Source: Monocercomonoides exilis PA203
Taxonomy: Eukaryota > Protista > Preaxostyla
Length of the DNA stretch: 64,000 bases
NCBI GenBank assembly: GCA_001643675.2
Contig: LSRY02000018.1
Span: 1,116,001 to 1,180,000, forward strand
Reading direction: 5' to 3'
Under the pieces are notes generated by a model. That model was not told where the DNA came from. It made no database searches and was given only the letters and a program-made list of their open reading frames with translations. This document shows positions 2,900-49,789 of this stretch, in pieces (the stretch's first letter is position 1; the number at the start of each line of letters is the position of its first letter). Made by a program: the position numbers and the translations under genes.

Positions 2900-3156
2900 C
2901 CAAAATTCAACAGAATTTAGTGCTCTCTATTTTCAAAAGCAAGACAACGAATTTTGATAATTAAAGTATGGGTTTCGATATAAATTTTTTCTCTTTTGAA
3001 ACATTATCAAAATCAATACACAATTATAGAAAATATAATCTAATAATTATTTAAAAAATTTTATAATTTAAAAAAAAAAAAAAATAAAAAAAAAAAACAC
3101 TGAGTGACGAAGTGACTGACGAATGATTTTGCTTTTTAGGGTGACGCAGAGGTTTA
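2900..3156. mobile_element. Terminus of a TIR element related to the 45502-49222 element (inverted orientation); other end not found in window
   Basis: Reverse complement from 3156 reads TAAACCT...CGTCAGTCACTTCGTCACTCAGTG-poly(T), matching the 45502 end TAAACCT...CGTCAGTGATTTCTGTTCACGTCAGTG-poly(T). A coding relic YGFRY lies ~190 bp inside, equivalent to YGIRY in the other element. Confidence 0.6.
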
Positions 3157-27900: not shown

Positions 27901-28577
27901 TGGAAAACAAACTTCAGTCACTGGCCAATCTCAGTCCTCACATTGTACTCTTCTCCGAACACATGGTGATCTGCATTGTGATGCACTCTGATTTCATTTC
28001 ATCTGATGATTCTGATTCATCATCCATCTCTTCATCAACAGTTGTGACATCTGCAAGTGATGATGATGATGACAGTGACTCCCTTCCACCATCAGCATTT
28101 GAGGATGAGGATGATTACAAGAAAGAGTGCTTGAGGTGGATGGCACCAGAATTGCTGATGAACAGGAAGATGGGGGCAACGAAGAAGTCTGTTGTGTTCT
28201 CGATAGGGATGATGCTGTGGGAGTGCCTGACGCTGGAGATCCCGTTTGGGGAGTATCCAGCAGAGGTGGCGGGACAGAAGATAGCGAATGGGGAGAGACC
28301 AGATGTTGCGAGGGCAGGCTCGCCAGATGGAGTGAAAGCAGCCATCGCTTGTCTGTCAATGGGCCGGTACGCCAGGCCAACACTCACAGACTTGAAGCGG
28401 GCATTCATCAGTCATTTTCCGGCTGGCTGTGCTGTTCTGACAGTGTCTGATGCAATTGGGCTGGAGGAAACAACAGACAGAGGCAAAAGAGAAAGTGGAA
28501 GTGCACAAAGTGGAAGTGCACAAAGTGGAGATGCACAAAGTGGAAGTGTTGTGAGTGGATACAGCACATTTGAATGA
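15960..28577 (+). CDS. Giant single-exon type-I surface receptor: signal peptide, pectin-lyase-like beta-helix repeats, eight CG..[PG]C modules, TM helix, cytosolic TKL-like pseudokinase
   Basis: 4205-aa ORF with signal MVLFFLLQLFCCVDVFA, GGAI/GGG+Y repeats and TM WALIVIVIFAVLFLIALIVSIVLAV. Kinase C-lobe motifs LRWMAPE and VFSIGMMLWECLTLEIPF are present; HRD and DFG are absent. Confidence 0.9.
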   Translation: MVLFFLLQLFCCVDVFASGLKNIKEENQIERHFVTSEPQNYTITPKNKINEHCQVRTCAHLVNSSLVLSRSCLLKGSGKVVETVDVLSEMKISDCELEAEGVMGSSFFVSVAGVVEMNNISVGSGKQGMCVNSLFSNRQIGRKDGASGSVLLKSSNFLSLSVSEGPFIDAYGTNSIWMCETVFSNISVERKVGGHRNAGRDGCQTTMVGCCFVSMEDVFYGSIVNPDCCAMSHLNSINNTYTNINRVRNANQTYSDVEGHQSLNCSGFFEDDTFIKCTAAYGGAISITGIESALTATRCQFQKCSARNNGGAISGERMLSTRVNSSVFNNISGGENTSIGYGGCLHFLEVLDGSLIENSVFNNNSQYSAGGSIYLRALSGYQYLNTPDSISNCSFMNSTVRGGNEGCIGYEQTKSHFTITELYCKNSCCPHEAGSLYFVIIPGNNHSDSKVSFCFFHNNTCGANFNGNDVYVQDGSGLFLGDKFVECFSTTLSNRLFHALKGTQNEWIPLFDTRFVDVVSGDDEEWTCGMRADQPCKTVKGALDHSGEEHSWVVKVGSEITYESGMEIGGKVVGIESTEHSREARNAMMWNGEGGRLFGIGAGRLKIGWMNVSVKMAGWVSVSVFVMSGDGELRVDESVVGCVCDGEDCGMERAVFVLGGGETRIVSSLIVGMRFRMGGSVFGMSGRARVVMEGSEVSGVVKTEGNGSVVERVVGEGEVFEFDNCTVRGCECREGDGGGIYVCVKKGGKVGVGNSTSTENTVEFVGCQAGSGGGERGGRGGRGGGVYLRVEDEDVDLCVKNVGFVENRGEEGKDLFVESGDLKGCVNVKRFVHVKEWSNGSVESCVGVDEKWPDVMIPLVFYVMEREERVVVGSGGHDVSACGFMEYPCRSVWYSMEQQGGGRKEVVVVGEYRMEENVLFGGGQEYVLNGGGREGERAEVVVVGSTSGAAGVVTIGGVGRMEELGLVLEAELAEEGMSVASVSGDGGEVEMAKCTVRGDGCENGVGFSFVRASGGKVTLSELEVFVVAGYEESRSFVEVSGGGCIVSVRNSSVEGGGGGGGKRSRFLKSEGAGSVELWNSTLRGIVVGGGDGGIVSGVVGLGQKISIDGGTLNGVCMEGNGGGVEVVVSDGGTVEVGRRLSTEFSLCSAGMRNEGGGVGGGVGVGRGGFGGGMMVKMEEGSREIYVKIVKFSGCSAGKAGRDIFMEAEKLSEVVDSERMGWITNMSDRAGAMGYENGCEHGIPLVLYLQPEPSVIAIGGAESWDFERCGYEGAGCRTLDYAMEKRGSILGLRSTIEMSVSLEREHVIGEGTVVVEGKGAGCVVDVGGSGEKKQDGLVVNKATTTIGNVGIQVPCGLNGRRSFVKSIGGALTMRSVVVVAKEGSMVGFRIVEATGGSVILSQVEMSGICFGECPFCEARDEGWVTVSSCTVSGCSTTCGGGLVHVEGGGSMSVQGSELTGVGRVDGGRAVCGKGGKSVEILNSNMSLWKVGDGDGGAAYVEVGEGSVFEWKGNVVRDSISEGGCGGGLKIGVEGSGKVRVGQSGVVTKFVGCRALKKENRGGCGGGVAMEFIGEGEVGRDYLVEGLTFEDNMAERGAKMFVEAEELWRVATAESVKVGGVEAAGTSNEHVGFDKGEELDVPLWVCVSEWEEPGYVGEEGVDYRVCGFERYPCGSVGFAIGARFGVGKVHIRLVESYMIRAEIVAERQEVDIEGAVEGAGVGVARDVEGGGECVFGTRGGVGRFGGMKMGVPSSFAPARRSLFCCSGGELCVEKWEMEAEGGAATYCVAECTAGLMTLRNVTVKDVNILTETGVVVVVVKGDGAKGVIDLLVLENITGGGRGGLVELGGGATAKWGNSTVGSCVFGEHGAVRFERGVSMEMGNNTFEGVARESGKGGVMEGVVGGLEKVVVKDCRLIEVECREGSGKGGGGYVEVEEGGEFLFDSNRVWGNKVNSGDGQGGGMYLVLGSRNVKYSVKMVEFGENEAYEGKNAYVVCADARALVNEKWWSGSARESDGEEKQLWVYDEASGRSLSMLPYLFPADEAIVFVNGGEGSNTKDCGEEVRPCLDVVYGVKQMGEGQRIVQIVGNGRVDGAVKGKGGWLTIQGKKETRALVAVGREGHLELTGEAGMVGLMLSRLRFCLPCTSTHGEVIEVRAGECSIVNCSFEAGEEGAGAGGGAETTGMGMWIGRGSGGSLEMSGIRIEDIRLGAGCGVFDVEGGEVSVEGAFIGGVDGEGSSVIVCEKCERVNVSGVDMGNCSCGEAVVVLRGVKRGWIGNGSMVDGCVSSKGKGGWLRWEASEEEEEEEEEKENEKEEEEGEVMIEGIEVKGCVAEGEEGKGGGIWMRLNGRKEGELLLRDVVFGRNRAREGRDLYVECESLNRTVKAEWIVNVVCGEGEGEGEVEMRGRDREHFFGEAVDLMMFVRQYVSRSVCVGRKGFDMVGCGSTAYPCATFWRGFMNTEASSEKKEMIIDGECEVRRSYDLSRFVIRSAGGASGEEKMGTLKFGGGLDEEAGGGGEGVVRNMEGLKVEKIKFLVGAQLPGSKGCVIYSYSYVGGVELSESIVEEEIGVWLGFSFVVVECGELTVRGCVVKGIWTLAPVLKVSVAGSGLIENTQFEDVSIGDSSVVEVVGTGSKGGGRWNGENRMAVNGCSFVGLKSEVGGEGVVLRGSVFGEVVVNGCKVEDVFAGGSLRGGGIGICVKGEGRMEVNGTSVKKCMCERRSGKGGGMYLMCTEALRELPFGVKNMIFGGNEAWMGRNMFVVAADLNGSVNEESLNVLLEGMGWDEKSFCGEDEMVGVVDLLMFVMSYESSTVHVSTRGLDVRRCGSEKEPCKTFYGGFMHIGGEGEEDDGEKKVVVEDASVMREGYDLSGFGIEGGDGEVETGKKAILLMENGGAGGESEAWMENRGRLGIREIGIEVGKGFESRKGAIIVNEGGKLELGKCEFVSESSANMPGRYSFVVCMGGEMEAEEVRVKDVFCERSVFVIRGARECKVEKMHGSSVSLWGGAVFEIDCEEGAECSGERSGVVVNGSTLEGIKRNGEGASVVECGTSRCVDVEIVGCVFEVCVSSESEKGGMMMMCVEEGGRIGVRKSEVRQCSCSTRNGKGGGMYVRSTVEGDVEMMFSGIEFESNTAHVGRDMFIECHDIGSQINETQFKLVLSSEVYNQINAIYGMDECEHALEPVNLLEFIMTYQADTIFVSGSGAAAGLDTKKCGSRALPCASIGYGLGHMTKIYESKLVVDGESEIESEIELAEVGVQSKWKEQAEVHVRSGMKQTKDCVVESVGEVEFEQLVFVFSGSFVSSHKMFMEVASGTAELRSIGVSSEGEAGVGRVPFVLFSVGSGERGGESGMKMWGCSIGGISCEHALIEIGKCGSLMATEVVLKDIECAKSLVQIGALSGNVSVKEVEVKRAKLVEGAVISHVWTGGNENEDSEVSSICGISLSRFENISRETSSPSVICWESGASEGLELVNCTCTGCTSEAERGKDVGICGANHVVMGACLFALEDTQRMEKGVEWDGGVCEWSGSLVDCIDSLVMMRDTTIANVSCGGLSMCGGSVTIVKGEFINNNPSMAKYPSMRRNVLCSGNGMVDVQSLKGGDGMQPSTSLWIMDGGCELMGIPAERASALFIPRLETVNMEESGKEMKLILGGMLLLPCNLSVRVVSAVGSTESLETYELEEEAIVSETEAHYWIEKAMICSAPAEAEVSVCILFGNGDSRSSTARHVLKNRTETKANGDKKLVESGKDVKSSWALIVIVIFAVLFLIALIVSIVLAVRWRMAKNEAKDLREIVNDTVRKDPKAFEMVTMEMSPEEQWRRAEREAEKKNDERIKKRVYDKTLEHSESSEHLLSESGSTEYILGRDSDKIPEWALEKEGEEETRKRTPSPSISSTSTTDSDSTFVRMEDMCPTTSSMSNLVDAMACSSPHEKLIVDLRDSLFMLLHGRNEKKEMAIGSLKEREVTSAQILFWVANLALHSFDEMENKLQSLANLSPHIVLFSEHMVICIVMHSDFISSDDSDSSSISSSTVVTSASDDDDDSDSLPPSAFEDEDDYKKECLRWMAPELLMNRKMGATKKSVVFSIGMMLWECLTLEIPFGEYPAEVAGQKIANGERPDVARAGSPDGVKAAIACLSMGRYARPTLTDLKRAFISHFPAGCAVLTVSDAIGLEETTDRGKRESGSAQSGSAQSGDAQSGSVVSGYSTFE
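28493..28548 (+). repeat. In-frame 15-bp tandem repeat (SGSAQ x ~3.7) at the receptor C-terminus
   Basis: AAGTGGAAGTGCACA x2, AAGTGGAGATGCACA, AAGTGGAAGTG. Confidence 0.9.
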
Positions 28578-29277: not shown

Positions 29278-32200
29278 TCAATTCTTTTTGCTTTTAACCA
29301 ATTTTCTTTGCTTTTTCGTTTTTTCTTTATTTTTTTGTGTTTCGCTTTCTTTTTCATGTATTTTCGCTTTTTTCACAACCTTCTGTATTTGTGGCTTTCT
29401 TTGAACCTTGTGAGCCATTTTTCTCAACTTATCGGTCTTCGCATCTTTCTCAGCATTTTTGACTGTTGCAATTTGGTTGTCTTCTGCAGCAAGCCCTTTA
29501 AACTTGCTTTGCTTATCTTTTTCTTTTTTTTCAATCTGCTTCCTTTCAACATCTGCATCCTCAGCATTCGAATTTGTTGAAAAGAAGCTTTTACTTCCAG
29601 GAAATTCATGAGTTTGATTTATTTCGTTTCTTATTTCTTCTGTTTCCGAGTTAGATTTGTTGTATCTGTTCATTTTTTGTCCTTCTTTCAACTCATATCT
29701 CTTTTTTGATTCTAAATTCTTATCGATTTTAATTTTTGCTTTTTCATCTTCTTTTTCTGTCTTTATAAATAGTTCTTTATTTCTATCTTCGAAACTGTTC
29801 GCATCATTATTTTTTTCATCGACTTTTACAACTTCAACTTTGAATTGTTTGATGCCATTTTCACCTTCACTTTCTCCTTCTTTTTTATTTATTTCCTTTA
29901 CACGCTTTCTCTTCTCATATCTCAAGCTCTGACCTTCTGTTCCTCTATCCTCATCTTTCAATTCAGCCATAAGGATCCTCAACACTTTCTCCATTTCTCT
30001 TACTCCTTTCTCGTTCAACTCATTCAACTCCTCTGAAGATCCAATTTTATCAACCTTTGCCCGTTCGCCACAATCATCAAATGCCCACTCTGCGACAAGC
30101 GGACGCAGAGTCGAAAGATGTGTTGTTGTGTCCCATTCATTTGCAATAGAAGGAGAACGCGGGGAAGAAGAAAGAAGAGGAGATGATGCAGCAGCTGATA
30201 TGGAAGAAGAAGGAGATGCATTTGAAAGAGGAGGTGAAGCTGAGAATGCTTTTGAATCATCAGAGTTTCTATTTGACATTTGATCAGTTTTCAGTTGTTG
30301 TTCGCTTTGCTTTCCATTTGGATGGCTTTGGCTGTTGATGCGACGCATTTTGGAGCACAACAAACAGCGCGAATTGTGTAGTTCCTCTCGAGAATTACCA
30401 GAAACAGAGGAAGAAGGAGCTGAAAACGATGACTGATGAAGATAATATTCAGAATCATTCTCATTCAACTCATTCTTCAATTCTGGTTTTTCCTGCTCAG
30501 TAATAGAATTGGCCGATGCTGGAAAAGCCAACAAAGCACGAGGATCAGCATTTGCATTATGCAACTTGCGCTGAAGACAGATCCGCTGCTTGTTGATGGG
30601 TGAGATGACCCACTGAACACAGCTGTCATCTCCAATTGCAGGAGAAGTCTGAGAAGAAGAGGAAGAAGATGATGTTGTTGAAGAAGAAGGTGAAGTATTT
30701 GAAGATGAAGAAGGAGTCGCAATTGAATGCGGATGTAGATGCAATGGATCCAGCGGATTTGACAGCAAAGACGTCGCCTGAATGGAGTCTGCTCTTTCGT
30801 CCTCCTTCTTTGCATCGTAGACAACCCCAACTGGATACACCATCACTCGCTCTTCTTCACTCAGCCTGTCATCCACAAGCCCCCTGCGCAGCTCTTTCAG
30901 CTCATCATCTCGAAACCACGGCTCTTCAAACACATCTCCCTCATCAGCAGCATCGCCTTCATTGCCACCACCGCTTCCACTGCTCTTGCTTCTGCCTTTC
31001 TTCATTCCTATCCTTTCTCTCTCTTTCTCTCTCTCTTTCTTCTTCTCTATCTCCTTTTCCCTTAGCTGTGCCCGTAGCCCCACTGCCTGCTTCCTGCGCA
31101 AATACCACATTCCTGCCTCACCATACTCGATAGTCGTTCCACACCCAACGCAATGCAACAGTTGCCCCGATGAACAAGGCGAAGAAGGATGAATGTCGCG
31201 GCAAAGATAGCGATTGTGCATTGTGACAGCGACAAGCGGAGATGGTGATGCAGACGAAACCACAAATGGTCCGAGTGTTATGTTGACTGGAGAATATGGC
31301 GGAAGCACAGCTGGGTTGATAACAGTTGCTGATTGCAGCGGCTGAGAATGTGGAGAAGAGGAAGATGAATCAGGCGAATCAGAAGAAAGTGGCTGATATT
31401 GCTGGCTGGTAAACATATCTTCGCATTTCAGTGATAATCCCTTCGGAAGATCTGAGGAAGTTGATGATGATGATGATGAAGCTTGAAGAGCTCTCGAAGA
31501 AGAAGACGATGATGCAGCCAGAGCATCAACCACATCCTGTCTTGTTTCTTCTCCTTCTTCCATTTCATAGCCGTCTACCACAACAGACCCCGGCGGAAGC
31601 ACAAACCGCACAAAGTAGATCCCATCTCCCAGCCCGTTGAAGCAGAACCCGCAGTTTTCTGTGCGAGTGGCAGCGACTTCAACTCTTTCGCTGTTCAGCA
31701 GCACGACAAACACACCCCGCAGCGAGTGGATTGTGCTGAACGAGCCACACGTTGGACACAACGTCCGCGACGGCAGATGGCGCGGAGACGAAAACAGAGG
31801 CGACGACGAAAGAGGAACAGCAGATGAGCTAAATGAAGTCGGAGATGCGACGGTTGCTGCTGCACCATTCAGCAACGTCTGAGTAGATAACTCAGAAGAA
31901 GTCGGTTTCTTTTTGTCGCCCGTTAATGCTTGATCGTTCAGACGTCTTATTCGACTGTTTTTCAAACCATTTGCTCTTTCTTTTCTTTCGTATCGCAACT
32001 TCCTCTCGTTCCTCAGCGCTTCCATCCTTTCTTTTTGCTCCTCGCTTGCCATCTGCGTCTTTTCTGTGCTGAATATCTTCTCCTTCTCTCTGTTGTAGTC
32101 TGACAGCAGTTCAGTCCTCATCTTCCCTCGTGCTGCTTCTGCTGCATCCACATTCCCCATCTTTCCAAAGCCCAACGACGACAGAATATCCCCCGCTGAT

Positions 32201-35200
32201 GGTGACTGGCCAAATTGTGGCGTGTCTGCTCTTCCTGCTTGGAGAGGATAAGGAGCACGGCGTGAGGGAGAAGACGACGAAGAGGAAGGAGAGTATGAAG
32301 GATTTGGCGGGCCAATTGGAGGCTGATAAGCAGACGGAGATGAAGGAGTTGTTGATGAGGGCGAGGAAGATGACTGGGCAGGTGGCTGCATCACAGTCGG
32401 CTGGCTTCCTCCTCCGTCCTGTACTCCATTGTTATTGAAGCTGTCTTCTTCTCTTTCTCTTTCCATTTCTCTTTCCTTTTGCAGCTGCCTTTCCTTCTCC
32501 TGTGCCATCAACTTCATCATTTCTGGAGTGGCCTTGTGGCAGTAGTGAGCATTGGGGCATATTTTGCAGAGAAGATTGACTTTTCCACAGAGCGAAGAGC
32601 GGAGGGGAGTTACAGGCACATCCACAAACGCTGATGAAGAAGCAGACACAAACACAGAAAACGAGCGGAAGGGAAGCGACGATTGAGGCGGAGGAGGAGG
32701 AAGAGGAGGGCAAAATGAAGAAGAAAAAGAAGAGCCTTGTTGTGCACCGTTGAGCGACTGGAGCGATTGGAGTGAGGTTTCGCTGTCAGAAAAGAGAGGA
32801 ATGCAGTTGAATGACTGGGAAGGTAAACGGTTGATGAATGGCATGCTCAGCTCAACAGGGTTTGTTGTGTGGATGTTGACATGTGCATTTGAAGTGCCTT
32901 CTTCGCTGTCTTCGTCGCCCATCAGCCCAAACACAATTCGTTCAAACAGCTTTTCGCGGCTGGCTGGTTCGTTTGGCTGAGAAGATAGAAGAGGATTGGA
33001 CACGCTCGACGACAGCTTCCGAAGAGATGCCAAAGAAGAAGATGATGACAGCCTGGAAATAGGAATTGGTCCGACAATAACTGTAAATTCAACAGGAGTG
33101 AGTGATTGTGTAACGTTTGTAAATGAAAATCTTCCGTTGTTGTTTGTTGTGGTCTGTGCAATCAGAATTTGTGAGCGATACAGCTGCACAATAATACCTG
33201 AGATTCCGTTGCTCCAAAGATCAGAAAGCAAAGAAGAAGAAGGCGAAGAGGAAGAAGATGACGATCCAACAGTGTTTTGTGTGTTGTAACTATCCACATA
33301 ATACACAATACCATCAATCCTATTCGAGCACGCTGAAACACACGAGAACTGGAAATCTGCTCTAGCAAACGATGCGCCCTGCGACACAGCGCCTGAAGCA
33401 TTCCCCTGTTCGCCCACGACGACCGTCTGAGTGAGGATGACAGGCGGCACACACAGCGGCGACTGGGCAATGAGTGTATACACTCCACTGGGAACGTTGC
33501 TGAGCATGTACATCCCATCGGCGTCGCTAATTGTGCCCAGAACAGTCCCATTTGGCAGAGTGAGAGAGAGATGCGTGCCTTTCGCCGGCCGCTCGCAGAT
33601 GCCGCGGCGCTGGCAGTCGATGCACGTCTGACCGATGACGCCTCTTCTCGTGCCACACAGAGAAGGATCATTCAGAGCGAGGTCGAGTGACACATTTGAC
33701 GACGGCTGAAGGAGAATGCGGGTGACGAAGATGAATTTGGAGGAAGAGGAAGAGGAAGAAGAAGCGGATGTGAAGGGTCCAATGAACAAGTCGTATGTGC
33801 CTGGTGGAATGAAGTAAAAACGTGCTATGCCAAATCCATCTGTATCTTCATCGAAGATCAACCTTGTTGTGTCTAATCGAATGCTCTTTTTGGAAGCATC
33901 TCCCTCAGCCCCGCCTGCACCTGCTTCTCCATCCTCTTCTCCTTCTCCTTCTCCTTCCTCCACTCTTCCTCTTCCCACCACCTCCTCTTCCCCGTCTTTC
34001 ACCTCCCTCAGCTCAATCGTCTTCCCCACAATTGGCTGGAAGGGCTCGTCACAGACGCCATCGCTGTCACAATCCAAACAGGCAGAAACAGTCAAATTTG
34101 TCGCATTTGCCGGCGGAGGAGGGACGGGCGGGTCGCAAACAGCAGCACAATAGAGAGGAAGGTGGAGGGCAGCCACAGATGCTGGATGAGGAGTGAAGGA
34201 GAGATTCAGAAATGTACCGCCTTCAGACGAGAGAGTGAAGAGGGCACGTTCAAATGAAGAGGAAGAAGACAAAGAAGAAGATGAAGACGATGATGATGCT
34301 GCTGTTGTTGGACAGAATGGTCCCATTGACAGTGTCACCGCTGGCTCTGGTGAAAGCGGGACAAAAGGGACAGTAAACAAGAAAGAGCCGTCTCTGTCAG
34401 TGATTGTGGAGATAGTTTGCTCGTTGATGGTCAAATAGACAGGCACGCCCACCAGAGGAGGCGTGTATTCTGTTTGAGAAGGGTCATCGGGATCGATTGG
34501 GACTGTTTGGCATCTTCCTGTTCTGTTGCAGTCTAAGCAGGCGACGCCTGCAATGAGAGAGGTGCAGAGAAGAGGGTTTCGGATGCGGATGTCGTGTGCC
34601 AGTGACTCATTGGCTGTGAAGGAGATGACATCTGAATATTGCACTTTCATTCCAGTTGGCAGCTCGCCTTCGAAATATGCTGTGTAGTTTCCGACTCCGA
34701 TGCCTTCAAACGAATATAATCCATCTACAACGGCAGCTGTCACATTGGTGATGGCATAAGACGCTGCTGCTGCCAAAGAAGAAGAAGAAGAAGAAGGTTG
34801 AGAAGGAGATGAATAGAAACGGAGGTCTATGCTTTTTGCCTGCTGTCTTTGTGAAGGAGTAGCTGCTGCCGTGCGTGTGGTTGTTGTGGTTGTCGTCGTC
34901 GTCGTTGTTTGAACAGGAGCTTTTCCGCTTCCTCCTCTCACTTTCGTCTTTGTGGTGGTGGAAGAAGAGGATGTTGCTGATCCGTCTGTTGGTGCTCTGC
35001 TTCCACCAACACGAATGGATGTGGGAGAAGAAGAAGAAGCAGAAGAAGCATAAGGAGAAGCCAATGTTCTTGGATTAACACCAGAAGATGAAGAATACAA
35101 GGCATCTGAGTCAGCCAGCAGCACATTCGCATCGACCAGAGTGATTGTGCCGTTGAGAGCCAGCTGCGTCTCGTTCTCATCGCCACACACCAGCCACACA

Positions 35201-38200
35201 CTGCCACTCACATTCCCTTCGCACAGCAGCCCACAGGTGAGCACCAGCTCCACCGGAAGCGGAGCATCCAGCGATGAGTCGTTGACTGTCACACTCGCAA
35301 AGGCAGTCGCTCTGGTTGGCCCGCACTCAATCGACGTTGAGATCAAATAGCCGCCAGACTCAGCCACAGCGCCGGTGCTGAAGTTTCCTCTGTCATCGGT
35401 GTAATACGTGGCAGCTGCTTGTGAGGCGATGGAGGTGATGGTGACGGGGTGGTTGGGGATGGGAGTGAGAAGAGAAGAAGAAGAAGAAGAAGAAGCAGTT
35501 GAACAAGCAAATACAACACTGCCTGTGATTGCCTTTGGAGCTGGCAGATGAGACTGGCAGAGGTTTGTTCCCTCGGGTGGGCGGAAAGGAACACGCACAC
35601 GAGGATCAAACAGGCCATTCACAGTGATGTTGGCCAGCTCCATTCCAGGCTGTGTGTTGCTGGCAAGGTAGAGCGTATATTCCCCCACTGGGACATTCTG
35701 TGCTTCTCCTACGCCTTCTTCATCGGTGTCGAAGAGATAGTAGAAAGGGGACATAAAGGAGTAGAGGAGGAAGGAGTCTGAGACAGGGACGAAGGGGATG
35801 TCACATTGAGGACAAGAAGAGGAAGAGGAAGAGGAAGAAGAAGAAGAAGAGGTAGAAGAAGGGGTGTTGCAAGCTAAGCAGACTTCAACATAGACTGTGG
35901 ATAAATCAGATGGCTGCGACTGGAGAGGGATGTTTGATGTGTTTTTGGGTGAAGTGAGGCTGGGAAGGAGAGAAAGAGAAGAAGGAAAATGAGAAGAAAT
36001 AGGAGAAGGAGAGGAAGATGATGATGATGATTTTGTTTGAGAAGGTTTTTGTCTCAGAGATTTTGCTGGTTTTGTGTTGAGAGAGGCAGAAGGAGGGTGG
36101 TTGATGAATGAAGGGGAGAAAGAACTGAAAGGAGAAAAAGAAGAAGAGGAAGGAGAAGGAGAAGAAGGTGAAAATGAGGAAGAAAAGGGAGAATTGTTAG
36201 AAGAATCAAAAGGAGATTGGAAAGAGCCAAAAGAGGAAGTGTAGAACTCGTCAGGTGCTGAAGAAGAAGGAGAAGCAGAAGAGGAATAAACAGGCTGTGA
36301 TTGTGTTGTGATTGAAGGCTCTTTTGGAAATGAGTCAAAATTGATGTCTCTATCTGCAAATGGCTTGAAATGAGGAAAAGAGTCAAAATCTTCCTCTGTG
36401 TATTTGCCTTCCTTTCCTTTTTTTGCTGGCAAAGTGGAAGAAGATGTCGATTTAGTCGTTACAGTTGTCTTTGTTGATGTCTTCGTAACGGTTTTTTCTT
36501 CTGTGTTTCCATCTTCCTGTTTAGTGTTCTCTCTTCTTTTGATTGTCTTGCTCCCTTCGCCTTCATTCTGCTTCTTCTGCTTCTCCTTCTCTTCTTCGCT
36601 TTTCACAAACAACATCACTTTCCCTTCTTCATCATATACTCTTTCTCTTCCTTCTCTTTCACTTTCTTCTCTTTCTCCAGCCACAAACATCACCCCTTCA
36701 TCTTCGTCTGGCTCAAACTGGGCAAATTCACTCATCCACCCCATCATTCCATTCACATCTTCATTTTTTCCTCTTTTTCCTCTTTTTTCTTTGTTCTCCT
36801 CTTCAATCATCTCCTTCATCATCTCCATCGCTTCCTCTTCCTCTTCATTTGCCTCAGAAACTTTATATTCCACGCCTTCTTCCAAAAACAGAAGCAAACT
36901 TCCTGTTTGGGGTGTTCGAAATACACCTCGATTGTTCACTTCTGGATGAGGAACAGGAGGCAATGGATGGATCTTTAAGAGGGAATTTGGCTTTGGAATA
37001 CATTTTTGATTGCCTTTTTCTTCATTCTCTTTATTTTCATTGTTTAATTTTGTTGATTTTGCATTTAAAGGCTTATTTTGAATTTTGGTGGTCTTCGCTT
37101 TTCTGATCTTAACAGAAGGAGAATGAGAAGGAGAAGAAGAAGAAGAAGGCAATTTTGATTCATTTGGAGATAATTTTTGTGTTGAAGTATTTTCCCTTTC
37201 TTTTGAGCTGATTTCACTTTCACAGGAAACAATATGCACTTCCACAAGAGGAATGACATTTGAACAGAGAGCATCAGAGGAAAGAGGGAAAGAGAGGAAG
37301 GTGTGCTTATTTGGAAAGAGTAGAACTTCGAAAGAGGAGGAAGAGGAAAGAAGAGGGGAACGGAAAGAAGAAGGAGAGGGAGAAGGAGAAGGAGAAGGAG
37401 AAGGCAAAGAACGGGAAGAAGAAAGAGGAGAAAGGTTTTTGAACGAAGTAGAAGAAGAAGATGTATTTGCAATAGACTTGCTGTATGCAACAGGAAGAAG
37501 ATAACGCTTTTGAGTGTGTTTCAATTGACTTCCTCTTTCAAAATTGGTATTTTCATCTAATTCTTCAAAAGATATGTCATTTTTTGTGTCTTCTTCAGGA
37601 ATTTCTGTGCTTTGTTGATCAAAAGCACCAAGGTCATTTGATAATAATCCATTTTTATTTGCTAAATTTATGTTTCTATAAGAAATATAAGGTTCATTTC
37701 TCATCTTTCTCTCATTTGAAATTTTCTCAATTTTTGGCTTAATTCCATCTTTATCCTTAACCACTTTCACTTTTTGTTCTTTCTCTTTCTCCTTCTCTTT
37801 AATTTTATCTTTCTCCTTCACACTTCCCTTTAACCAATTGCTGTTTAATTTGTATCCAGCGAATTCTGCCTCCACATTCAGCCGTGTTCTGCCTGGGCGC
37901 AGCTTCTTCACAGAAAAAACGCCTTCTTCTCCAATTTGAACTTCGCGACTGGAAAACTCGTCACCCATAAGAGGAAGTTTGAGAGAAGAAGAAGATTTCT
38001 TTTTGATTGTGGAACTTTTTGTTGATGAAGAAGAAGAAACGGAGGAGGAGGAAGAAGAAGAAGAAGTTGATGTTGATGGTTTCTTTACTGCTGGTTTGAC
38101 TGATGATGAAGAAGAAGATGAAGATGAAGCAGAAGATTTTGGTTGTGTTTTGTCTGTTTTCGCTTTTCTTTTGATCTTCGATGTTGCATTCCCTTCATTC

Positions 38201-40138
38201 ATCACATTCAACCCTCTCATCAACTCTGCCGCATCTTCATTTCCCATCAAAATATTATCATTTCCTTCTCCTTCTCCTTCTTTACCATCTTCTTCTTCTG
38301 CTTCTGCTTCTGATGCCACTTGTTGCAATCCGCTTATCTTTCCCTTTGAGATCGGAATGAAGTTGTCTGTGCAGTTGCCTTCGCCCGCACAATCCACGCA
38401 AACAACACCAGTCAGCGCTGCTTGGCACATCGGATGGTATCTGAAGGAGGAGTCTTCATTAGACAGGGAATTGGAGGATGAACTGAGAGGAGGAGAAAGA
38501 GAAGAAGAAGAAGAAGAAGGTGAGTGAAGACGCAAAGAAGGCACAAAAGGCGAAAGAGGGAAGAAAATGTGGACGATATCTGGCTGTCCATAAAGCGACA
38601 AGGCGATTGTTGTTGGCGACGGCTGTGGAAAATGAGCAGACAGAAAAGAAGGAAGAGTCAGAGAAACGGTGCAGTTGACTGTGCTTTGTGCTTCTGTTTG
38701 GGCTGAGTCTGCATCTGGAATAGAAATAGCTGTTTGGCTTTTATTTTTATTTTTATTTTTGAGAAGGGTGTTTAGATTTGAAAACACAGCACATCCCCTT
38801 CGGATAGACTGTGTGATGTTTGGGAAGATGTTATTTGGAGAAGATAGTGTCACAACTGAGCCGTCAAGTGGAATGGAAAACGAAGAGCAATGTTCAGCTG
38901 ATATGAATAGAAAGAAATATTAATAAAGGAAATAATAATTGTTATTGGATATTTTGGATTGTTTGAGTTGAAACAATATTTCAGAGAAAAATTCAATGAA
39001 AAAGATCAAAATAAGAAGAAAGAATGGTAAAAAAAATCAATAGAATAGCATTAAACAAGTTTTAACTTAAAAAAAGAGCATACTTTCATCGCAGTCGATG
39101 CATGCACTCACAACAACAGTGGATTGTTTGTATTGGCATTCATTCATTGATTCGGCTGGAGTGAAGGCAATTTGAACAATGTTGAAGGCTGAACTGGAAT
39201 TGGCATATATCTGAGCTTCTTTATACAAAACAGAGGATCCGTCGACTTTATGCGAAACACATTAGAATGCCACAGAAATTAGGAAAAAAGAAATTTGAGT
39301 AATTTGTTAAAATAAGATGCATTTATAATAAAAAAAATGTGCAAACATTTTTTAACTCTCAACGTGTAATCTCCTTCAGCTGGCAAATCAAAAAGGCAGA
39401 CCCCGTTTCTCACTTTTCCTTCAAAAAATATGGCTCCGTTAGCAGAAGCCCCACACCAAATGTTCTGAGTTTGAAGAGTTTCAAAAGCATTTGAGTCTTT
39501 TGACTCGTTAGATCCACAATCATGTACAAGGACGATTTCAGCAGGAATTGATTTCGTTCCTATAATGCTTCTAAGAACAAATTCTTTCTTTGAGTCTTTC
39601 ATGTTGGCAAAAAAAGTCTATTAACAGCGAAAATTAAAGAAAAAATTCACAAATGCATATTAGAAAATAGCATACAAATGAAGGGTTTCCAATAGCATTT
39701 TCCATTTGAATCAAAAATTTCATGGTTTTTGGACTTTCCGAAAAATTGATTTTGTCAAAAGAAATTTTAACATCAACAGGGTGTTGTGCATCTCCAATGT
39801 TTTGCAAAAGTTGAAAATCTTTTTCTTTCCTTGCAATGACATGGATATTTTTCGCACTTTGCGATGAAACATTTGTTATTTTACAGTCTGAAGAAACAAA
39901 TAAAAATTCGTTTAAAAATTCCATTCAAACCTTCGTGACAAAAAATTGAAAATTCCGAGGAAGAAAAATTAAGAGCATTAAAATATGTAATAGATAATTC
40001 TATTTGATTGTTTTGTTTTGTTTTTGTTTCTATTACGCAAAACGGCGAGTTATTTTGATCATCAGCAAGTGCCTTATACTTCAAGCTAGAAGCAGTTCTT
40101 AGCAAAAAGCAAAGACACAAAATAATGTAACTTTGCAT
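29278..40138 (-). CDS. Very large secreted protein (~3,500 aa) with repeated SdrD-B/Cna-B/carboxypeptidase-regulatory-like beta-sandwich domains and Ser-rich linkers; four 5' introns
   Basis: Signal-like MQSYIILCLCFLLRTASS. Small ORFs 39881-40138, 39634-39924, 39279-39602 and an exon near 39084-39242 splice through GT-AG into the 3191-aa ORF. Motifs 'TD..G.Y/F...VP.G.Y' and 'CxDC...G.C' recur. Confidence 0.8.
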
Positions 40139-43766: not shown

Positions 43767-45266
43767 TTATTTTTGAAGAGGTTTGAATTTGTATCTTAGC
43801 AAATATCGCTCATGTCGTGATATAAGGAAATTTTTGTACCATCTTCGCAAAATTCTATGAATGCAATAGACAATATCTTCGTATCCCTCTTCTTCCAGCT
43901 TTGCAAACATTTTTCTTTTCGTAAGCAATGCTCCTGTATCTGTTTTCTCAATTCCTGAGTTTTCGTTCAATCTGCTCAAAAGCATTGAAATGAACATCAA
44001 GCAGTGGCACACAGGGATATCTTTCAAAGAAGGCTGAGTGACTTCTTCCAAAACAAATTCGTCTGCGCCTCCTTCCAAAAAGTCATCAACACTTGCAACT
44101 TTCTTTCGGTTCATGGACTCCATTAGAAGCATGCTATTTTTGTGTACTTCTTCGTTGCATTCTCTTGCTGTTCTGCACATCCTGACAACGCAAGCAATCA
44201 ATTTTGCAATTTCTTCGCTTTTCACTTCGATGCATACAAAACACTTCTCAAGCATATAGCACCATTTTCTGATCACCCATTCTGCTTTCATTTCTTTTTC
44301 ATCCTTTTCTTTATTCTTCTGCTCCATCTCTTTTCTCAACTCTTCCAGTTCATTGACAACTTCCCTCTCAAAATGAAGCGAGTCTGTGATCTCTTTTTTC
44401 AACTCTTCTTCGTGGCTTAATCTGTCTATTAAAAACTCCCAAGCGGACTGATAGGCAAGATGTGTGAGATTGCGATGCTTCTGGTGATATTTGATGATAT
44501 CCATTATCTCGTTCAGATAAAGTTCTTTTTCAATAAACTATTTTAAAATGCAAATGAAACAAGAAGGTTATCAAAGAAATTTTTTTTTAAAAAAAAGAAT
44601 ACCTCTAATTGCCCAATATTGCTCAAAGCCAGCAATGCCATTTCCACTTCCATTCGAGCTTCCTCGTCTTCCTCTTTTTTCAATGCTTCTTTCAGAAAAC
44701 AAGGAACGCACACATAAAGCAAATTTTTATCAATTCCATGATAATCATCAACATTTCGATTCAAAAAATAGCACTCGCAAAGATCAATCAATAAGTGATA
44801 ATTTTTATCTTCTTTTTTGTTTTCTTCATCGCATATCATCGTTTCTAATCCTCCCGACAATGAAGAAAAATAAAAGTTATTGCTATATATTCCTTTCAAT
44901 TTTTTGCAATAGCCCGTACGCTTCAGTAGCAAAACAGCGTTTTCTAACAACAATTTCTTTTCTGTAATCATTTTGTAAAGCTTGTCAAACAGTTTCACGG
45001 TGAAGGAGGACCAAAACTGTTCCTCTTCCATTGCATCTACCAAATGGCTCATTTCATTGATTTTTTGATGTTGTTCCTTTTCGTTGCAAAATTTAAGTTC
45101 GGAAAATAATCCTTTTCCTATTTATTTGTTTTGTTTAATTTCTTTGCAAATAATCCAACAAATTCTTCCAAAGAAAGAAGGACACACTTTCAAGCTTTTC
45201 TTCTTTTGACTCTAAATGTAATTCTCCATTTGAGCTACTTTCTTGATTTGCCTGCGCAAAAAGCAT
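43767..45266 (-). CDS. Lineage-specific expanded helical (ARM-like) family protein, paralog 1, multi-exon
   Basis: Motifs LFSEL, EVEMALLALSNI, YHQKHRNLTHLAYQSAWEFLI and LEEEGYED are shared with 54747-56150. GT-AG introns near 45111-45187 and 44540-44602; the start is tentative. Confidence 0.75.
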
Positions 45267-46049
45267 AACCTAATTCTTAAAAGCTTTCGAAAAAAACATT
45301 TCAATCAAAATTCATATATCATATCTAAAAATTGTAAAAAATACTGAAATAAATTTGAATTTTTCAAAGCTTAAAACGAACATTGAGAATACTTTCTTTT
45401 TCGAAAAATATATGATGGAACATAAGATCAACATACAAAATAACTTTCTTGTGTAAATGCGATGTGTTTTATTTCTTCAATTCTGTTGATTGTTAGTGGG
45501 CTAAACCTGAGTGACGCACAGTAATTTTTGCTGCCACGTCCGTCAGTGATTTCTGTTCACGTCAGTGAATTTTTTTTTTTTTTAAAAAAAAAAAAGAGTT
45601 CGTTTAAAATGGTTCAGACCCTAATCCATTTATATGTTTTCTTTACACATTATTTTGTAAATATTTTCTATGTTTAACATGTAATATCTTATCCCATAAA
45701 TAGATTTCCATTTTTTCTTTGAATGAATTGTTCCTTTGTAAGAATTGTTGCGCATTGATAATGTGATAATGTTCATTTAGTGGTTGCAAACTTATTGTTT
45801 ATTCCATAAATTTTCTGTAAACAACTTTAATAGTTTGAACTTTATAAAATTAATCTGATTTTTCATTTTTCATCGTTTTTAAAAAATATTTCAAAGATAC
45901 AATTCATACATTCATTTCTGTGAGGAAGATGGCTTTAAGAAAACACTGAGTGAATCTTTAATTGGAATATTCTAAGAATTTTTCTCAAAAAAAATCTCTT
46001 TTTCGATACATTTTTCCATATTGACATTTCTTTTTCTTCTTCTCTTCCG

Positions 46050-47869
46050 TATTCGTTTTTATCTCCACACCACTCGATCGCTTCTTTCTGCTAATTGGTG
46101 CAACATACTTCTACCAAATAAGATCTCCAAATGACACTCTTGTTCATGTTGGAACTGAATCTCTAAGAGAAACATCTGGAAGACTGACTGCTTTTGATGA
46201 GAACAGCCATTGCTTCGAATGGTGTGAATGGAATGATTCAACTGGTGGATCAAGCGACGGAGTCGCACTTTCAGTTACTTGCATTAATGCAATTCTCGCA
46301 ATCAAATCTTGCTCATTCAACAATATTTCAACAACTGGGGAAGGAGGAGCATAGCATTGTCAAAGTTTGTTGAATGTCAACATCACAAAATCCACTTTCT
46401 CAGGTTGTTCGGGTTCTTCTGGAGGAGCTTCTTAAAAATCAATTCCTCAATCTAACTCTATTTGGACATTCTCAGAATACAGAGTGAAAAGCTGCTCAAT
46501 AATAAGCACGATTGGAACTGGTTGGTATTTTGGAATCTATAGCACGCCTTCAAATGCTCAATTCCTGTTTTCCAAATGCAAGTGCATCGCAAATTCTGGA
46601 AACGATTCAACTGGTGCTCTAACATTCAATTGACCTCCTCAAATAAAACCAAATCAATTTTCAATCAATGAGCGTATATTCATCAATAATAAATTGACAA
46701 ATTCAACTACAAGTGGTGGAGCTGGAATTATTACGGAAGTGACATTTCCATGGATGAACGGAGTGAAATTCATCACATTCTGTTTCTTTGATAGCAACAC
46801 AGCAACAAATGGCAGAGGAAACGATGTGTTCTTCAATAGCAGCAGCATTACTCAATCTCCTTTCCAGCAATGCGGCTCAACAACTCCGACTAAAAGAGTG
46901 TTTAATTATGGAATAGCTGATAATACCGTGTGCAACAGTTGGCTCCCCCTCTTCGCTCAGAACAAAATCGTTTCCAGCAATGGAACAAACACCAATCTCT
47001 GCGGAATCACATAGCTCAGTCCATGCAAAACAATTGAATTCTCTCTTGTTCACATGACAGATATCCAAGACGCCTCTCTCACTCTCCTTTCCTCAATATT
47101 TGTTCCAACTCAAACACTCACCTTCAGCGCGGTTGACACCATAATCACAGGAAATGGTACAACTGCCACCACAATCGCCTCCAGTGGAATTACTCAGCCA
47201 CAAAACTCACATTCACAGTCATCACAGTCATCATCATCATTTTCATCAACATTTTCTTCACCAGATCCATCTGCCTCGTCTGCCCTCTTCCAACAGACCC
47301 AGGGTTCCCTCACAGTCTCTGCCCTCGCACTCGCCCACAACTCCACAAATCAAATCACCCCCATCCTCTTCCACCTCTCCGATAACTCCCCTTCCCTCAC
47401 TCTCAACACAACCACCATCACCGGAACAACCCCATCTTCATCATCAATCACCACACCCCTCTTCTTCCTCACTGCTGGCTCCCTCACCCTCAACCACACA
47501 GCAATCACCAGTCTCGCTCTCAACAGCCAAAGCATCTTCCACCTCACCTCCCTCACAAATCCCCTCACCCTCAACTCCTCCAACATCACCCACATCACCT
47601 CCACAGCTTATCCCACCAGCTGTGTCCTCTCCTCTGCCACCTCCCCTGCCCTCTCCCTCTCCCTCACCAACTGCACCATCACCAACATCAACTCAGAACA
47701 GTTGAGCCAACAGACTGCCACCAATGGCGGGTGCATCTTATTCACCTCGTCTGCCTTTGCCAACTCGTTTTCAGTAAAAAGAAAGAAGTTCAACGAGAAT
47801 GAGATGAATGAGAAAAATCGAAGAATGAAAAAGAAGAAAAAGAAACAGCTTCTTAAGTTTTATATGTGA
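46050..47869 (+). pseudogene. Captured, decayed fragment of the beta-helix surface receptor family (Ser/Thr-rich subtype)
   Basis: 'FITFCFFDSN..GRGNDVFF', 'WLPLF' and 'LCGIT*LSPCKTIEFSL' (TAG at 47012-47014), then GGCILF. Further stops and frameshifts upstream; homology ends near 47775. Confidence 0.8.
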
Positions 47870-48076
47870 ATGCAATAAAAGTATCGAAACAATATTAAAC
47901 ATCTTTTTCCACAGTTTTCGAGATATATTCTGTGTTAATCTCAATGTTTAAAATTTTTTTGCAAATATAGAAGATCTAATAATTTTTAATCAGTTTTTAT
48001 TTTGATATGAAATGTTAAAAATTAAAAAAAACCTCAAAACAATGATGTTTGCAAATGAAAAACATGAACAACAACC

Positions 48077-48930
48077 TCAACAGTTCATCCAATGCTTTGT
48101 GCCTGATGAATGTCTTTTATCTTCCAGTTTGTGAAGCATCCCAGAGATGATTCTTTCACAGTTGGCTTCAGGATAAATTTCGAGATCTTCAAAACAATCG
48201 TCTTCCATCAAATTATTTTCTTCGAACGGTTGAGATAGAGTATATTTAGCTTTCTTTTTTGATAATAACACTTGTTAATTATAAATGTGCAGATGATGAT
48301 AATGAAGATTATTATATAGAAATTGATGAAGAAGAAACAGATTAAGAAGAAAATTAAGTTGATAATGAAAATTCATCTCATGATAATTCATTTCTTATTG
48401 GGACGTAATCATCTCCACCATTATTTTCTTTGGCTTGATAGAATTAATATTCATCTGCTTCATCAAACGTATCCAAATTTTCTTCATTAACTGAGTAAAA
48501 ATTTTGGATGAATAATTTCATTCTTTAATTTCCGTAATAAGCAGGAGCACAGAAAATTTTTCATTTTTGCTTGACTCTTTGTTGATTTCGCTTTCATCAT
48601 TATCTTTTTCTGTAGATGATCTAATTGTTGAAAAAATGTTGATTTCACAATTCAACTGATAATTATTTTTCGTTTTCAAAAAATCTCCTTGAAACTCCAG
48701 CTAATGAAGATATTTTTGGTTCTCTCTTCAAAGATCTAAATGAAGAAAATTGATTATTATCAGCAGGTGACCAGAAAGAATCTGCTTTCGAGTGATAAGA
48801 AGTAATTTATGAAGGAAACAAATAAATAATTCAAATATATTCTGTTAATAACAAACTATTTCAGATGTAAGCATGACATTTTTTCCTTCAATAAACCGAA
48901 TCGCTATCATTTTTCTCTTAAATTCATGGA
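48077..48930 (-). pseudogene. Decayed 5' part of the element's own ORF (acidic/Ser-rich)
   Basis: Fragmented reading frames (SKADSFWSPADNNQ.., ENLDTFDEADEY.., EDDCFEDLEIYPEANCE..) begin just inside the right subterminal motifs; many stops. Confidence 0.4.
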
Positions 48931-49789
48931 GAGTTTGACCTGACTTGTCCTGACGGGCATGACCGTCACTGACGATCTAAAATTCCTTATTTGACAATTC
49001 GTCAGTATCCCATAGAAACTTTTTTTTATAAGTGATATAAACGACGATTCATGATTTTCTTGTGCAAAAAAATATTTGAGGATAACATAAAATAAAATAT
49101 TTTATTTTTTTGAGTTTAAACGAGATTATTTTTCTTCAAAAATATTACTGACGTGGAATTTTTTCCGAGTCCGTCAGAATTGAAAATTTTCACGTCAGTA
49201 GTCATTACGTCACACAGGTTTATAGTGGGCATTTCAATATCGGTAAAAAAAAATTGGATTCATACATTTTTATTTATTTGAACCATAACTGATGAATGCA
49301 ATAATGATATTTCGATAGTGGTTATAAATTACAGCGATTCAAAACACAAAAACCTATATTTGAAATCCAATTTTCATATTTATATGGAAAACTTCCCCAT
49401 TTCAAATAAAAAGACCCAAATCAATTGATGAAATATTAAGTTTTCGTTAAACATAACCACAACATATTCATTGACAATGGATAAATCTTTTTTGTGGAAT
49501 ATGGTACTTAAAAGCCACCTAACCAAATTAAAGATAAACTTGAGCTCATATGTTTAAAGCACATTTGAAAAGATAATTCAATCATTTATCAGTGGAAAAA
49601 ACAGATTTTTAAGAATAAAATTTTGATCAACCCATAAAAAAATTCAAAATATTTGTGCACAATATTTTAGGTTTTAATATTGATGAGTATATTTATTATA
49701 CAAAAAACATTAACCAATGTCAATTATTTAATCATTTGATGGAGGAAATACAGAATTTGTTGAAAAATTTTTACGATAATGCAGAAACA

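Follow-up and report, generated by a model that had tools for sequence, protein, structure and literature searches.

What is the segment at positions 45494-49230 of the 64,000-nucleotide stretch of Monocercomonoides exilis PA203 contig LSRY02000018.1 analysed here (the window), and how did part of a host receptor gene come to lie inside it? The original prediction, made from the letters alone, described a DNA transposon with terminal inverted repeats (TIRs) and a target-site duplication (TSD), belonging to no recognised superfamily, in which receptor DNA had replaced the central part of the transposase gene. The present analysis suggests that the element is very probably a non-autonomous member of a hAT family that captured the host piece once, long ago, and was then amplified, the transposase gene decaying later and the cargo being overwritten by conversion. 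The features on which this reading draws are as follows.

45494-45501, no strand: left TSD, TAGTGGGC (repeat search; a short-read contig spans flank and element)
45502-45516, plus strand: 5′ TIR, TAAACCTGAGTGACG (pattern match; same terminus at ~77 exact sites in the genome)
45517-46117, plus strand: 5′ subterminal non-host region without a conserved open reading frame (ORF) (subfamily alignment, motif scan)
~46118-47840, plus strand: captured piece of a receptor-like kinase ectodomain (β-helix region), a pseudogene (subfamily alignment, host homology)
47862-48945, minus strand: remnant of a hAT transposase gene, decayed and with internal deletions, and ~215 bp of 3′ flank (DNA match to the contig 26 copy, C-terminal motif)
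48946-49207, minus strand: 3′ subterminal region with at least seven CGTCAG/CTGACG motifs, presumed transposase-binding repeats (motif scan)
49208-49222, minus strand: 3′ TIR, TAAACCTGTGTGACG (pattern match; contigs of other copies diverge right after 49222)
49223-49230, no strand: right TSD, TAGTGGGC (repeat search)

The element measures 3,721 bp (45502-49222), and its predicted boundaries, 15-bp TIRs and a perfect 8-bp TSD, were borne out. The TIR pair gives the only matches in the window (chance expectation 0.12), and TAGTGGGC occurs exactly twice, each copy touching one TIR. Both junctions between element and flank are spanned by Illumina-derived contigs of the source sample (45200-45563, 45361-45531 and 49193-49500), and the 3′ end is fixed independently by contigs of other copies, which match up to 49222 and then diverge. 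The motif CGTCAG(T)/CTGACG is confined to at most 60 bp from the 5′ end and at most 270 bp from the 3′ end, the sole exception being a partial hexamer, GTCAGT, at element position 682. At the 5′ end the motif stands at 45541 and 45560, next to a T14A12 tract (45564-45601) at which the short-read contigs break. This homopolymer just inside the 5′ end differs by 37 nt between two otherwise near-identical copies, L067 and L068 (element positions 68-104). Farther in, the interval 45687-45778 is conserved between subfamilies.

That this is one member of a transposon family is evident from the M. exilis genome as a whole (82.3 Mb in 101 contigs), in which each end of the element matches dozens of places. 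The proposed search for paired TIRs with 8-bp TSDs resolved the ~77 exact TIR sites into at least 30 pairs of 2.8-8.6 kb, from which 12 complete copies of 2.8-4.0 kb were compared, giving 13 together with the window copy. Every one of the 13 has its own 8-bp TSD (12 perfect, one with a single mismatch), and the TSDs of the 12 genome copies (11 perfect, one with the mismatch) all differ from one another. Oriented to the element, TSD position 2 is T in 11 of the 13 copies (p = 7e-4) and position 7 is A in 7 of the 13 (p = 0.15); the TSD of the window copy conforms to neither preference. Two 3.47-kb copies, L067 and L073, are 99.7% identical and have different TSDs, showing that the family has been mobile recently. 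Termini, duplications and other copies thus confirm that the element is a TIR/TSD DNA transposon.

The family also has reduced members. MITE-like derivatives (miniature inverted-repeat transposable elements) of 305-324 bp, with little beyond the two ends, are present at L060 (C12:638072-638375) and at L048 and L050 (contig 41). On the opposite strand of the window itself, positions 3026-3121 are 74-85% identical to element positions 40-168 of several copies and include a degenerate TIR-like site at 3095-3109, so that this fragment is a second, broken family member.

To which superfamily does the family belong? Of the two minus-strand relics that the original prediction placed near the ends, the one at 48077-48930 is real and is best read as a decayed hAT transposase gene. 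Its last open piece reads ...EANCERIISGMLHKLEDKRHS... and ends at a stop codon at 48077-48079, and its C-terminal motif, EANCERIISG...KRHS (48107-48169), aligns with SEASCERIFS...RHS, which M. exilis transposases positive for PF05699 have at the corresponding C-terminal site. The window retains ~870 bp of coding remnant, interrupted by at least nine stops in every frame, and ~215 bp of 3′ flank; about 1.9 kb of the gene is missing. Window positions 47843-48945 match a 7.2-kb copy on contig 68 and, on contig 26, regions inside and just past a 917-amino acid (aa) ORF; specifically, 47862-48169 and 48344-48642 correspond to contig 26 positions 670340-670646 and 669501-669800. This stop-free 917-aa frame matches a hAT transposase query (E = 9e-21 and 5e-14), itself positive for the Pfam hAT dimerisation domain, PF05699, and is enclosed by TIRs of the same family at 667217 and 674052, making up a 6.8-kb copy. 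PF05699 finds many ORFs of 900-1000 aa in the genome, two of them inside TIR pairs of the form TAA[C/G]CCTGGGTGACG, and the same-TIR transposase of contig 26 is ~32% identical to other hAT clades of the genome. A tblastn search with hAT C-terminal halves against the fetched loci and the window gave no match at 1e-4. Searching the protein database with the hAT transposase returned one annotated M. exilis protein only, because transposons were masked before gene prediction. On sequence comparison, then, the element family is assigned to hAT and is not unclassified, given the preference for T at position 2 of its 8-bp TSD, its subterminal repeats, the C-terminal motif of the relic, the same-TIR 917-aa ORF and the sister-TIR ORFs of 900-924 aa.

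The sister hAT elements with TAA[C/G]CCTGGGTGACG termini, at C2:1489118-1498137 (9.0 kb) and C8:56422-68675 (12.3 kb), contain hAT ORFs of 924 and 900 aa, respectively, without stops. Both are far larger than a transposase gene requires and may carry cargo too.

The position of the relic bears directly on how the receptor DNA entered. Read from left to right, the window element consists of the 5′ TIR, the cargo on the plus strand, the 3′ flank and stop codon of the transposase, the transposase relic on the minus strand, and the 3′ TIR; by its coordinates the contig 26 copy is arranged alike. Because the transposase stop and ~215 bp of its 3′ flank are found on the right-hand side of the cargo, gene and cargo face each other tail-to-tail, with the cargo beyond the 3′ end of the transposase gene and not in its middle. 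The replacement originally proposed, in an element of unclassified superfamily, could appeal to the 8-bp TSD combined with a TAAAC terminus that departs from the textbook hAT consensus, and to minus-strand ORF-like stretches on both sides of the cargo. However, the C-terminus, stop and 3′ flank of the transposase are all on one side. The supposed left relic (~45630-45790) amounts only to AT-rich open stretches of 48-51 codons that are missing or different in the other 12 copies. Furthermore, the cargo is found in all subfamilies, including the transposase-bearing contig 26 copy with its intact 917-aa hAT ORF, and in an 8.2-kb copy on contig 10. Replacement of the central transposase region is therefore highly improbable, and a capture specific to this copy does not agree with a cargo and junctions common to all subfamilies. 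Loss of the transposase, through deletions of about 1.9 kb and stops, is on this comparison an event separate from the capture. The same deletions and stops recur in copies on contigs 40, 62 and 15, showing that the transposase gene was dead before this subfamily amplified.

The cargo itself was correctly recognised as receptor-family coding sequence and as a Pack-type capture of a host ectodomain fragment. It occupies one plus-strand frame, 46025-47866, interrupted by in-frame stops at 46352, 46433, 46631 and 47012 and closed by a TGA at 47867. A start codon is lacking, host similarity may extend weakly as far upstream as ~46064, and a Pfam search of the cargo returned no family. In the genome the segment is highly repeated, with 719-2193 first-look candidates across searches (the upper figure from a six-frame search with L061, an open 618-codon version of the cargo), and well over a thousand paralogs share 70-80% identity with it. 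Outside elements, the scored matches fall at dozens of loci in ORFs free of stops, either ~700-780 aa or 2700-3100 aa long, with 70-81% aa identity, and the element-borne matches in the six-frame search are mostly interrupted by stops. Annotated M. exilis proteins run past both ends of the fragment, so that the cargo is an internal piece of a gene. In the long host forms MONOS_5057 and MONOS_7112, the fragment maps to the N-terminal ectodomain, and one strong transmembrane helix is followed by a C-terminal PF07714 kinase lobe. The proteins P0021 and P0023 have transmembrane helices at 1772-1803 and 2127-2159, respectively, and a PF07714 C-lobe each; as no kinase N-lobe or catalytic motifs were detected in these two, they may be pseudokinases. 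An AlphaFold model of a host protein covering the fragment shows tandem right-handed β-helices (predicted local distance difference test, pLDDT, 74), and the best structural matches of the host ectodomain model are PL6 alginate lyases, pectin methylesterases and phage tailspikes. The source of the cargo is a giant family of receptor-like kinases, with an ectodomain predicted to form β-helices.

Because the segment is so extremely repeated, and because 35% of the genome has been classed as "unclassified repeat" (PMC8767320), one might suppose that the receptor-like segment is itself mobile and was inserted into a hAT element. A search for termini or a TSD of its own, which in the original prediction would have meant a nested insertion and not a capture, found neither TIR nor TSD at the segment borders. 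At non-element loci, moreover, the segment runs uninterrupted within stop-free ORFs of 2700-3100 aa that continue as coding sequence on both sides of it and include a transmembrane helix and a kinase lobe, and insertion of a mobile segment is barely credible.

Two further observations concern the source family. On contig 25, at roughly 1.5-2.5 Mb, a cluster of dozens of stop-free ~400-780-aa paralogs, short ectodomain forms with many inverted neighbouring pairs, is the source of the closest matches to the element cargos. On contig 40, P0017 (764 aa, annotated as MONOS "putative nuclease HARBI1") joins a PIF/Harbinger-type DDE_Tnp_4 nuclease (PF01609, PF13359) to receptor ectodomain sequence, namely the C-terminal half of the cargo-type segment and sequence beyond it; it represents either a second transposon superfamily in, or capturing, the receptor gene family or a merged gene model.

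Was the piece captured once or many times? When cargo was tabulated per copy, homologous cargo was found in all subfamilies. All copies of 3.4-4 kb can be aligned to the window copy over its element positions ~623-2339, at 73-78% identity, and for L064, L069 and L071 the alignment extends upstream, from element position 186. The junction sequence 5′ of the cargo, within 45517-46117, is common to all subfamilies, and in three of them the non-host sequence upstream of the junction is alignable at both the DNA and the peptide level. The 3′ limit of full-length cargos is identical in all comparisons (element position ~2339); in the L067 group the cargo is cut ~250 bp earlier at its 3′ end. These shared junctions argue for one ancestral capture followed by amplification, and the comparison points to a single ancient event that would have preceded the split of the subfamilies.

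Recurrent independent captures, with a different paralog taken up in each subfamily, would account for a star-like tree in which element cargos are interleaved with host genes, for the L061 cargo, which shares 81% aa identity with a host gene and 78% or less with every other element cargo, and for cargo divergence far above that of the flanks. Yet independent events would have had to hit the same 5′ junction, behind alignable non-host sequence in three subfamilies, and the same 3′ limit. The excess divergence, moreover, lies in internal blocks and not in the whole cargo, and in one case in a tract of 63 bp within otherwise identical copies. We regard recurrent capture as quite improbable.

The blocks were seen in mismatch profiles taken over 100 nt at a time, in which sister copies that otherwise differ by 2-8% contain cargo blocks with 15-40% mismatch. 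Between L062 and L063, 157 mismatches fall within 600 bp of such a block, compared with 207 in 3300 bp elsewhere (p = 1e-41), and L067 and L068 are near-identical save for poly-T length, yet have 18 substitutions inside 63 bp. Across copy pairs, cargo divergence exceeds the divergence of their flanks at all three codon positions and is highest at position 3; for L062 and L063 it amounts to 0.10, 0.09 and 0.24 at the three positions, against 0.05-0.08 in the flanks. For the L068 tract and the L062 block, the nearest sequences are non-element paralogs on contigs 25 and 51 (93% nt, 83% aa), whereas the best match in any element copy is lower (88% nt, 77% aa or less). The simplest reading of this mosaic would be repeated gene conversion or template switching with paralogs, and the best matches suggest host paralogs as the donors. 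Mutation bias as the cause of cargo divergence was rejected, codon position 2 having both the highest guanine-plus-cytosine content and the lowest divergence.

A ~900-bp cargo deletion (window element positions ~816-1721) is common to L065 (contig 40), L066 (contig 16) and L074 (contig 15), although their 3′ parts are not of one subfamily; element subfamilies may thus have recombined with one another.

Could the cargo nevertheless be functional, either as a secreted β-helix protein or decoy, or as a source of antisense or small RNA directed against the receptor family by transposase read-through? It is kept in every subfamily and in transposase-bearing copies, L061 retains its 618-codon open frame, several element-like cargos are annotated as genes, and the convergent orientation of cargo and transposase would give antisense RNA on read-through. 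Furthermore, the ratio of nonsynonymous to synonymous substitution (dN/dS) is 0.3-0.5 among element cargos, though 12 of the 13 copies have in-frame stops. That ratio can be explained in another way, because conversion imports divergence accumulated under selection in host genes; selection on the cargo itself (dN/dS < 1) was rejected, cargo divergence exceeding flank divergence. None of the copies has a start codon at the junction, and three copies have the ~900-bp deletion within the cargo. The RNA-library contigs that cover the cargo do not match it exactly and hence come from paralogs; two low-depth RNA-library contigs match 48050-48309 exactly, a weak signal for which DNA carry-over is a possible source. 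A functional cargo is thus distinctly unlikely, and the window cargo is a pseudogene, with any function putative only.

Collectively, these comparisons support a model in which the ancestral element would have consisted of a 5′ TIR, a short subterminal region, a ~1.75-kb host ectodomain piece on the plus strand, a hAT transposase gene on the minus strand, the 3′ repeats and the 3′ TIR. The host piece would have been acquired once, before the subfamilies split, as the shared junctions suggest, and would since have been carried by cut-and-paste transposition, which leaves the observed 8-bp duplications with T preferred at position 2. In the window lineage, the transposase gene lost about 1.9 kb and gained stops before the subfamily amplified, as the defects common to its members show. 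The window copy could then be mobilised only by a transposase supplied in trans, for example from the 6.8-kb contig 26 element. Gene conversion or template switching would repeatedly have overwritten the cargo in tracts of short to medium length; the mosaic is observed in the copies, and host genes are its probable donors.

Several results weigh against this model. The original prediction proposed looking for an allele with an empty site; no such allele, excision footprint or joint skipping the element was found among the short-read contigs, which cannot prove absence. Neither the window relic nor any piece of it has a meaningful Pfam match. The tree of cargo and host proteins is star-like, and the element cargos do not form one clade, although a single clade is not rejected either. 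Searches for a donor of the L068 tract and of the L062 block brought up no near-identical sequence, the best candidates reaching 93% nt and 83% aa. The structure of the long copies on contigs 1, 6, 10, 26, 46 and 68 is read from coordinates only, and the same holds for the TSDs, the catalytic residues and the exact extent of the cargo in the transposase-bearing copies. Finally, hAT TIRs begin with the consensus (T/C)A(A/G)NG; in this family the TIR starts TAAAC, which fits at positions 1-4 and has C instead of G at position 5. This deviation looks like a trait of the lineage, since other M. exilis hAT elements with intact transposase ORFs also have a TAA[C/G]CC start.

The original prediction also saw in the element a route for shuffling receptor modules. 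The conversion tracts in the element cargos lend this idea partial, indirect support; transfer from element to host is a proposal only. Extended in both directions, it would make the hAT family a mobile exchange partner for a hypervariable part of the receptor-kinase ectodomain, taking up tracts, donating them back by gene conversion from new insertion sites and, in addition, giving rise to antisense RNA against the receptor family by read-through from the convergent transposase gene. We consider this extension unlikely; if it were true, the exchange would help both to diversify and to homogenise the largest gene family of M. exilis, and an exchange running both ways would be a mechanism of receptor diversification. 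As it stands, the result is mainly one of annotation and genome evolution. The M. exilis genome is 46% repeat, with 35% "unclassified" repeats that partly overlap a very large tyrosine-kinase family (PMC8767320). One multi-copy family is now assigned to hAT, some of the kinase-like "repeat" signal is traced to transposon cargo, and a number of annotated "uncharacterized proteins" probably represent element-borne pseudogene pieces.

Two large genes lie elsewhere in the window. On the plus strand, 15960-28577 holds a 4205-aa ORF that ends in a PF07714 kinase C-lobe, a giant receptor-like kinase of a subfamily other than that of the cargo's parent. On the minus strand, 29278-38853 holds a 3191-aa ORF with SdrD_B and CarboxypepD_reg-like β-sandwich repeats.

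In our literature search no account of hAT or Pack elements from Monocercomonoides came up, and in kind the element is an ordinary one; its moderate interest lies in an ancient receptor fragment carried family-wide and in the conversion tracts within it. Ac/Ds elements have short TIRs, subterminal repeats and an 8-bp TSD (nTnnnnAn-like), and their deletion derivatives keep both ends and are moved in trans. The M. exilis family resembles these Ac/Ds-type hAT elements in its short TIRs, subterminal repeats, 8-bp TSD and internally deleted derivatives, but has the terminus TAAAC instead of (C/T)A(G/A)NG and a host gene fragment downstream of its transposase gene. With the Pack-MULEs of rice and the Pack-CACTA elements of Arabidopsis it shares the capture of internal gene fragments, without start codons and in most cases pseudogenes, which may have regulatory or exon-shuffling side effects; those elements, however, belong to other superfamilies, have TSDs of 9-11 bp or 3 bp and long TIRs, and usually contain no transposase remnant. 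A further likeness is to the Pack-hAT and other Pack-TYPE elements that maize and rice are known to have (Gisby & Catoni 2022, PMC8903248), which are likewise non-autonomous TIR elements with an 8-bp TSD and a host gene fragment inside, mobilised in trans. The window element agrees with Pack-TYPE elements in its TIRs and TSD, in having no transposase coding capacity and in its host-gene-derived interior; it departs from them in that the cargo appears not to have been acquired by the non-autonomous element itself and does not differ from one element to the next. Whereas plant Pack-TYPE cargos are typically diverse and low-copy, here one cargo, drawn from a family with ~2,200 first-look candidate loci and marked by conversion mosaicism, is common to a whole family of dozens of copies in several subfamilies and is also present in a copy with an intact transposase. 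The host, moreover, is an oxymonad protist, and the element thus offers a clean example from outside the plants of a gene fragment long carried by a DNA transposon family while exchanging sequence with its parent family.

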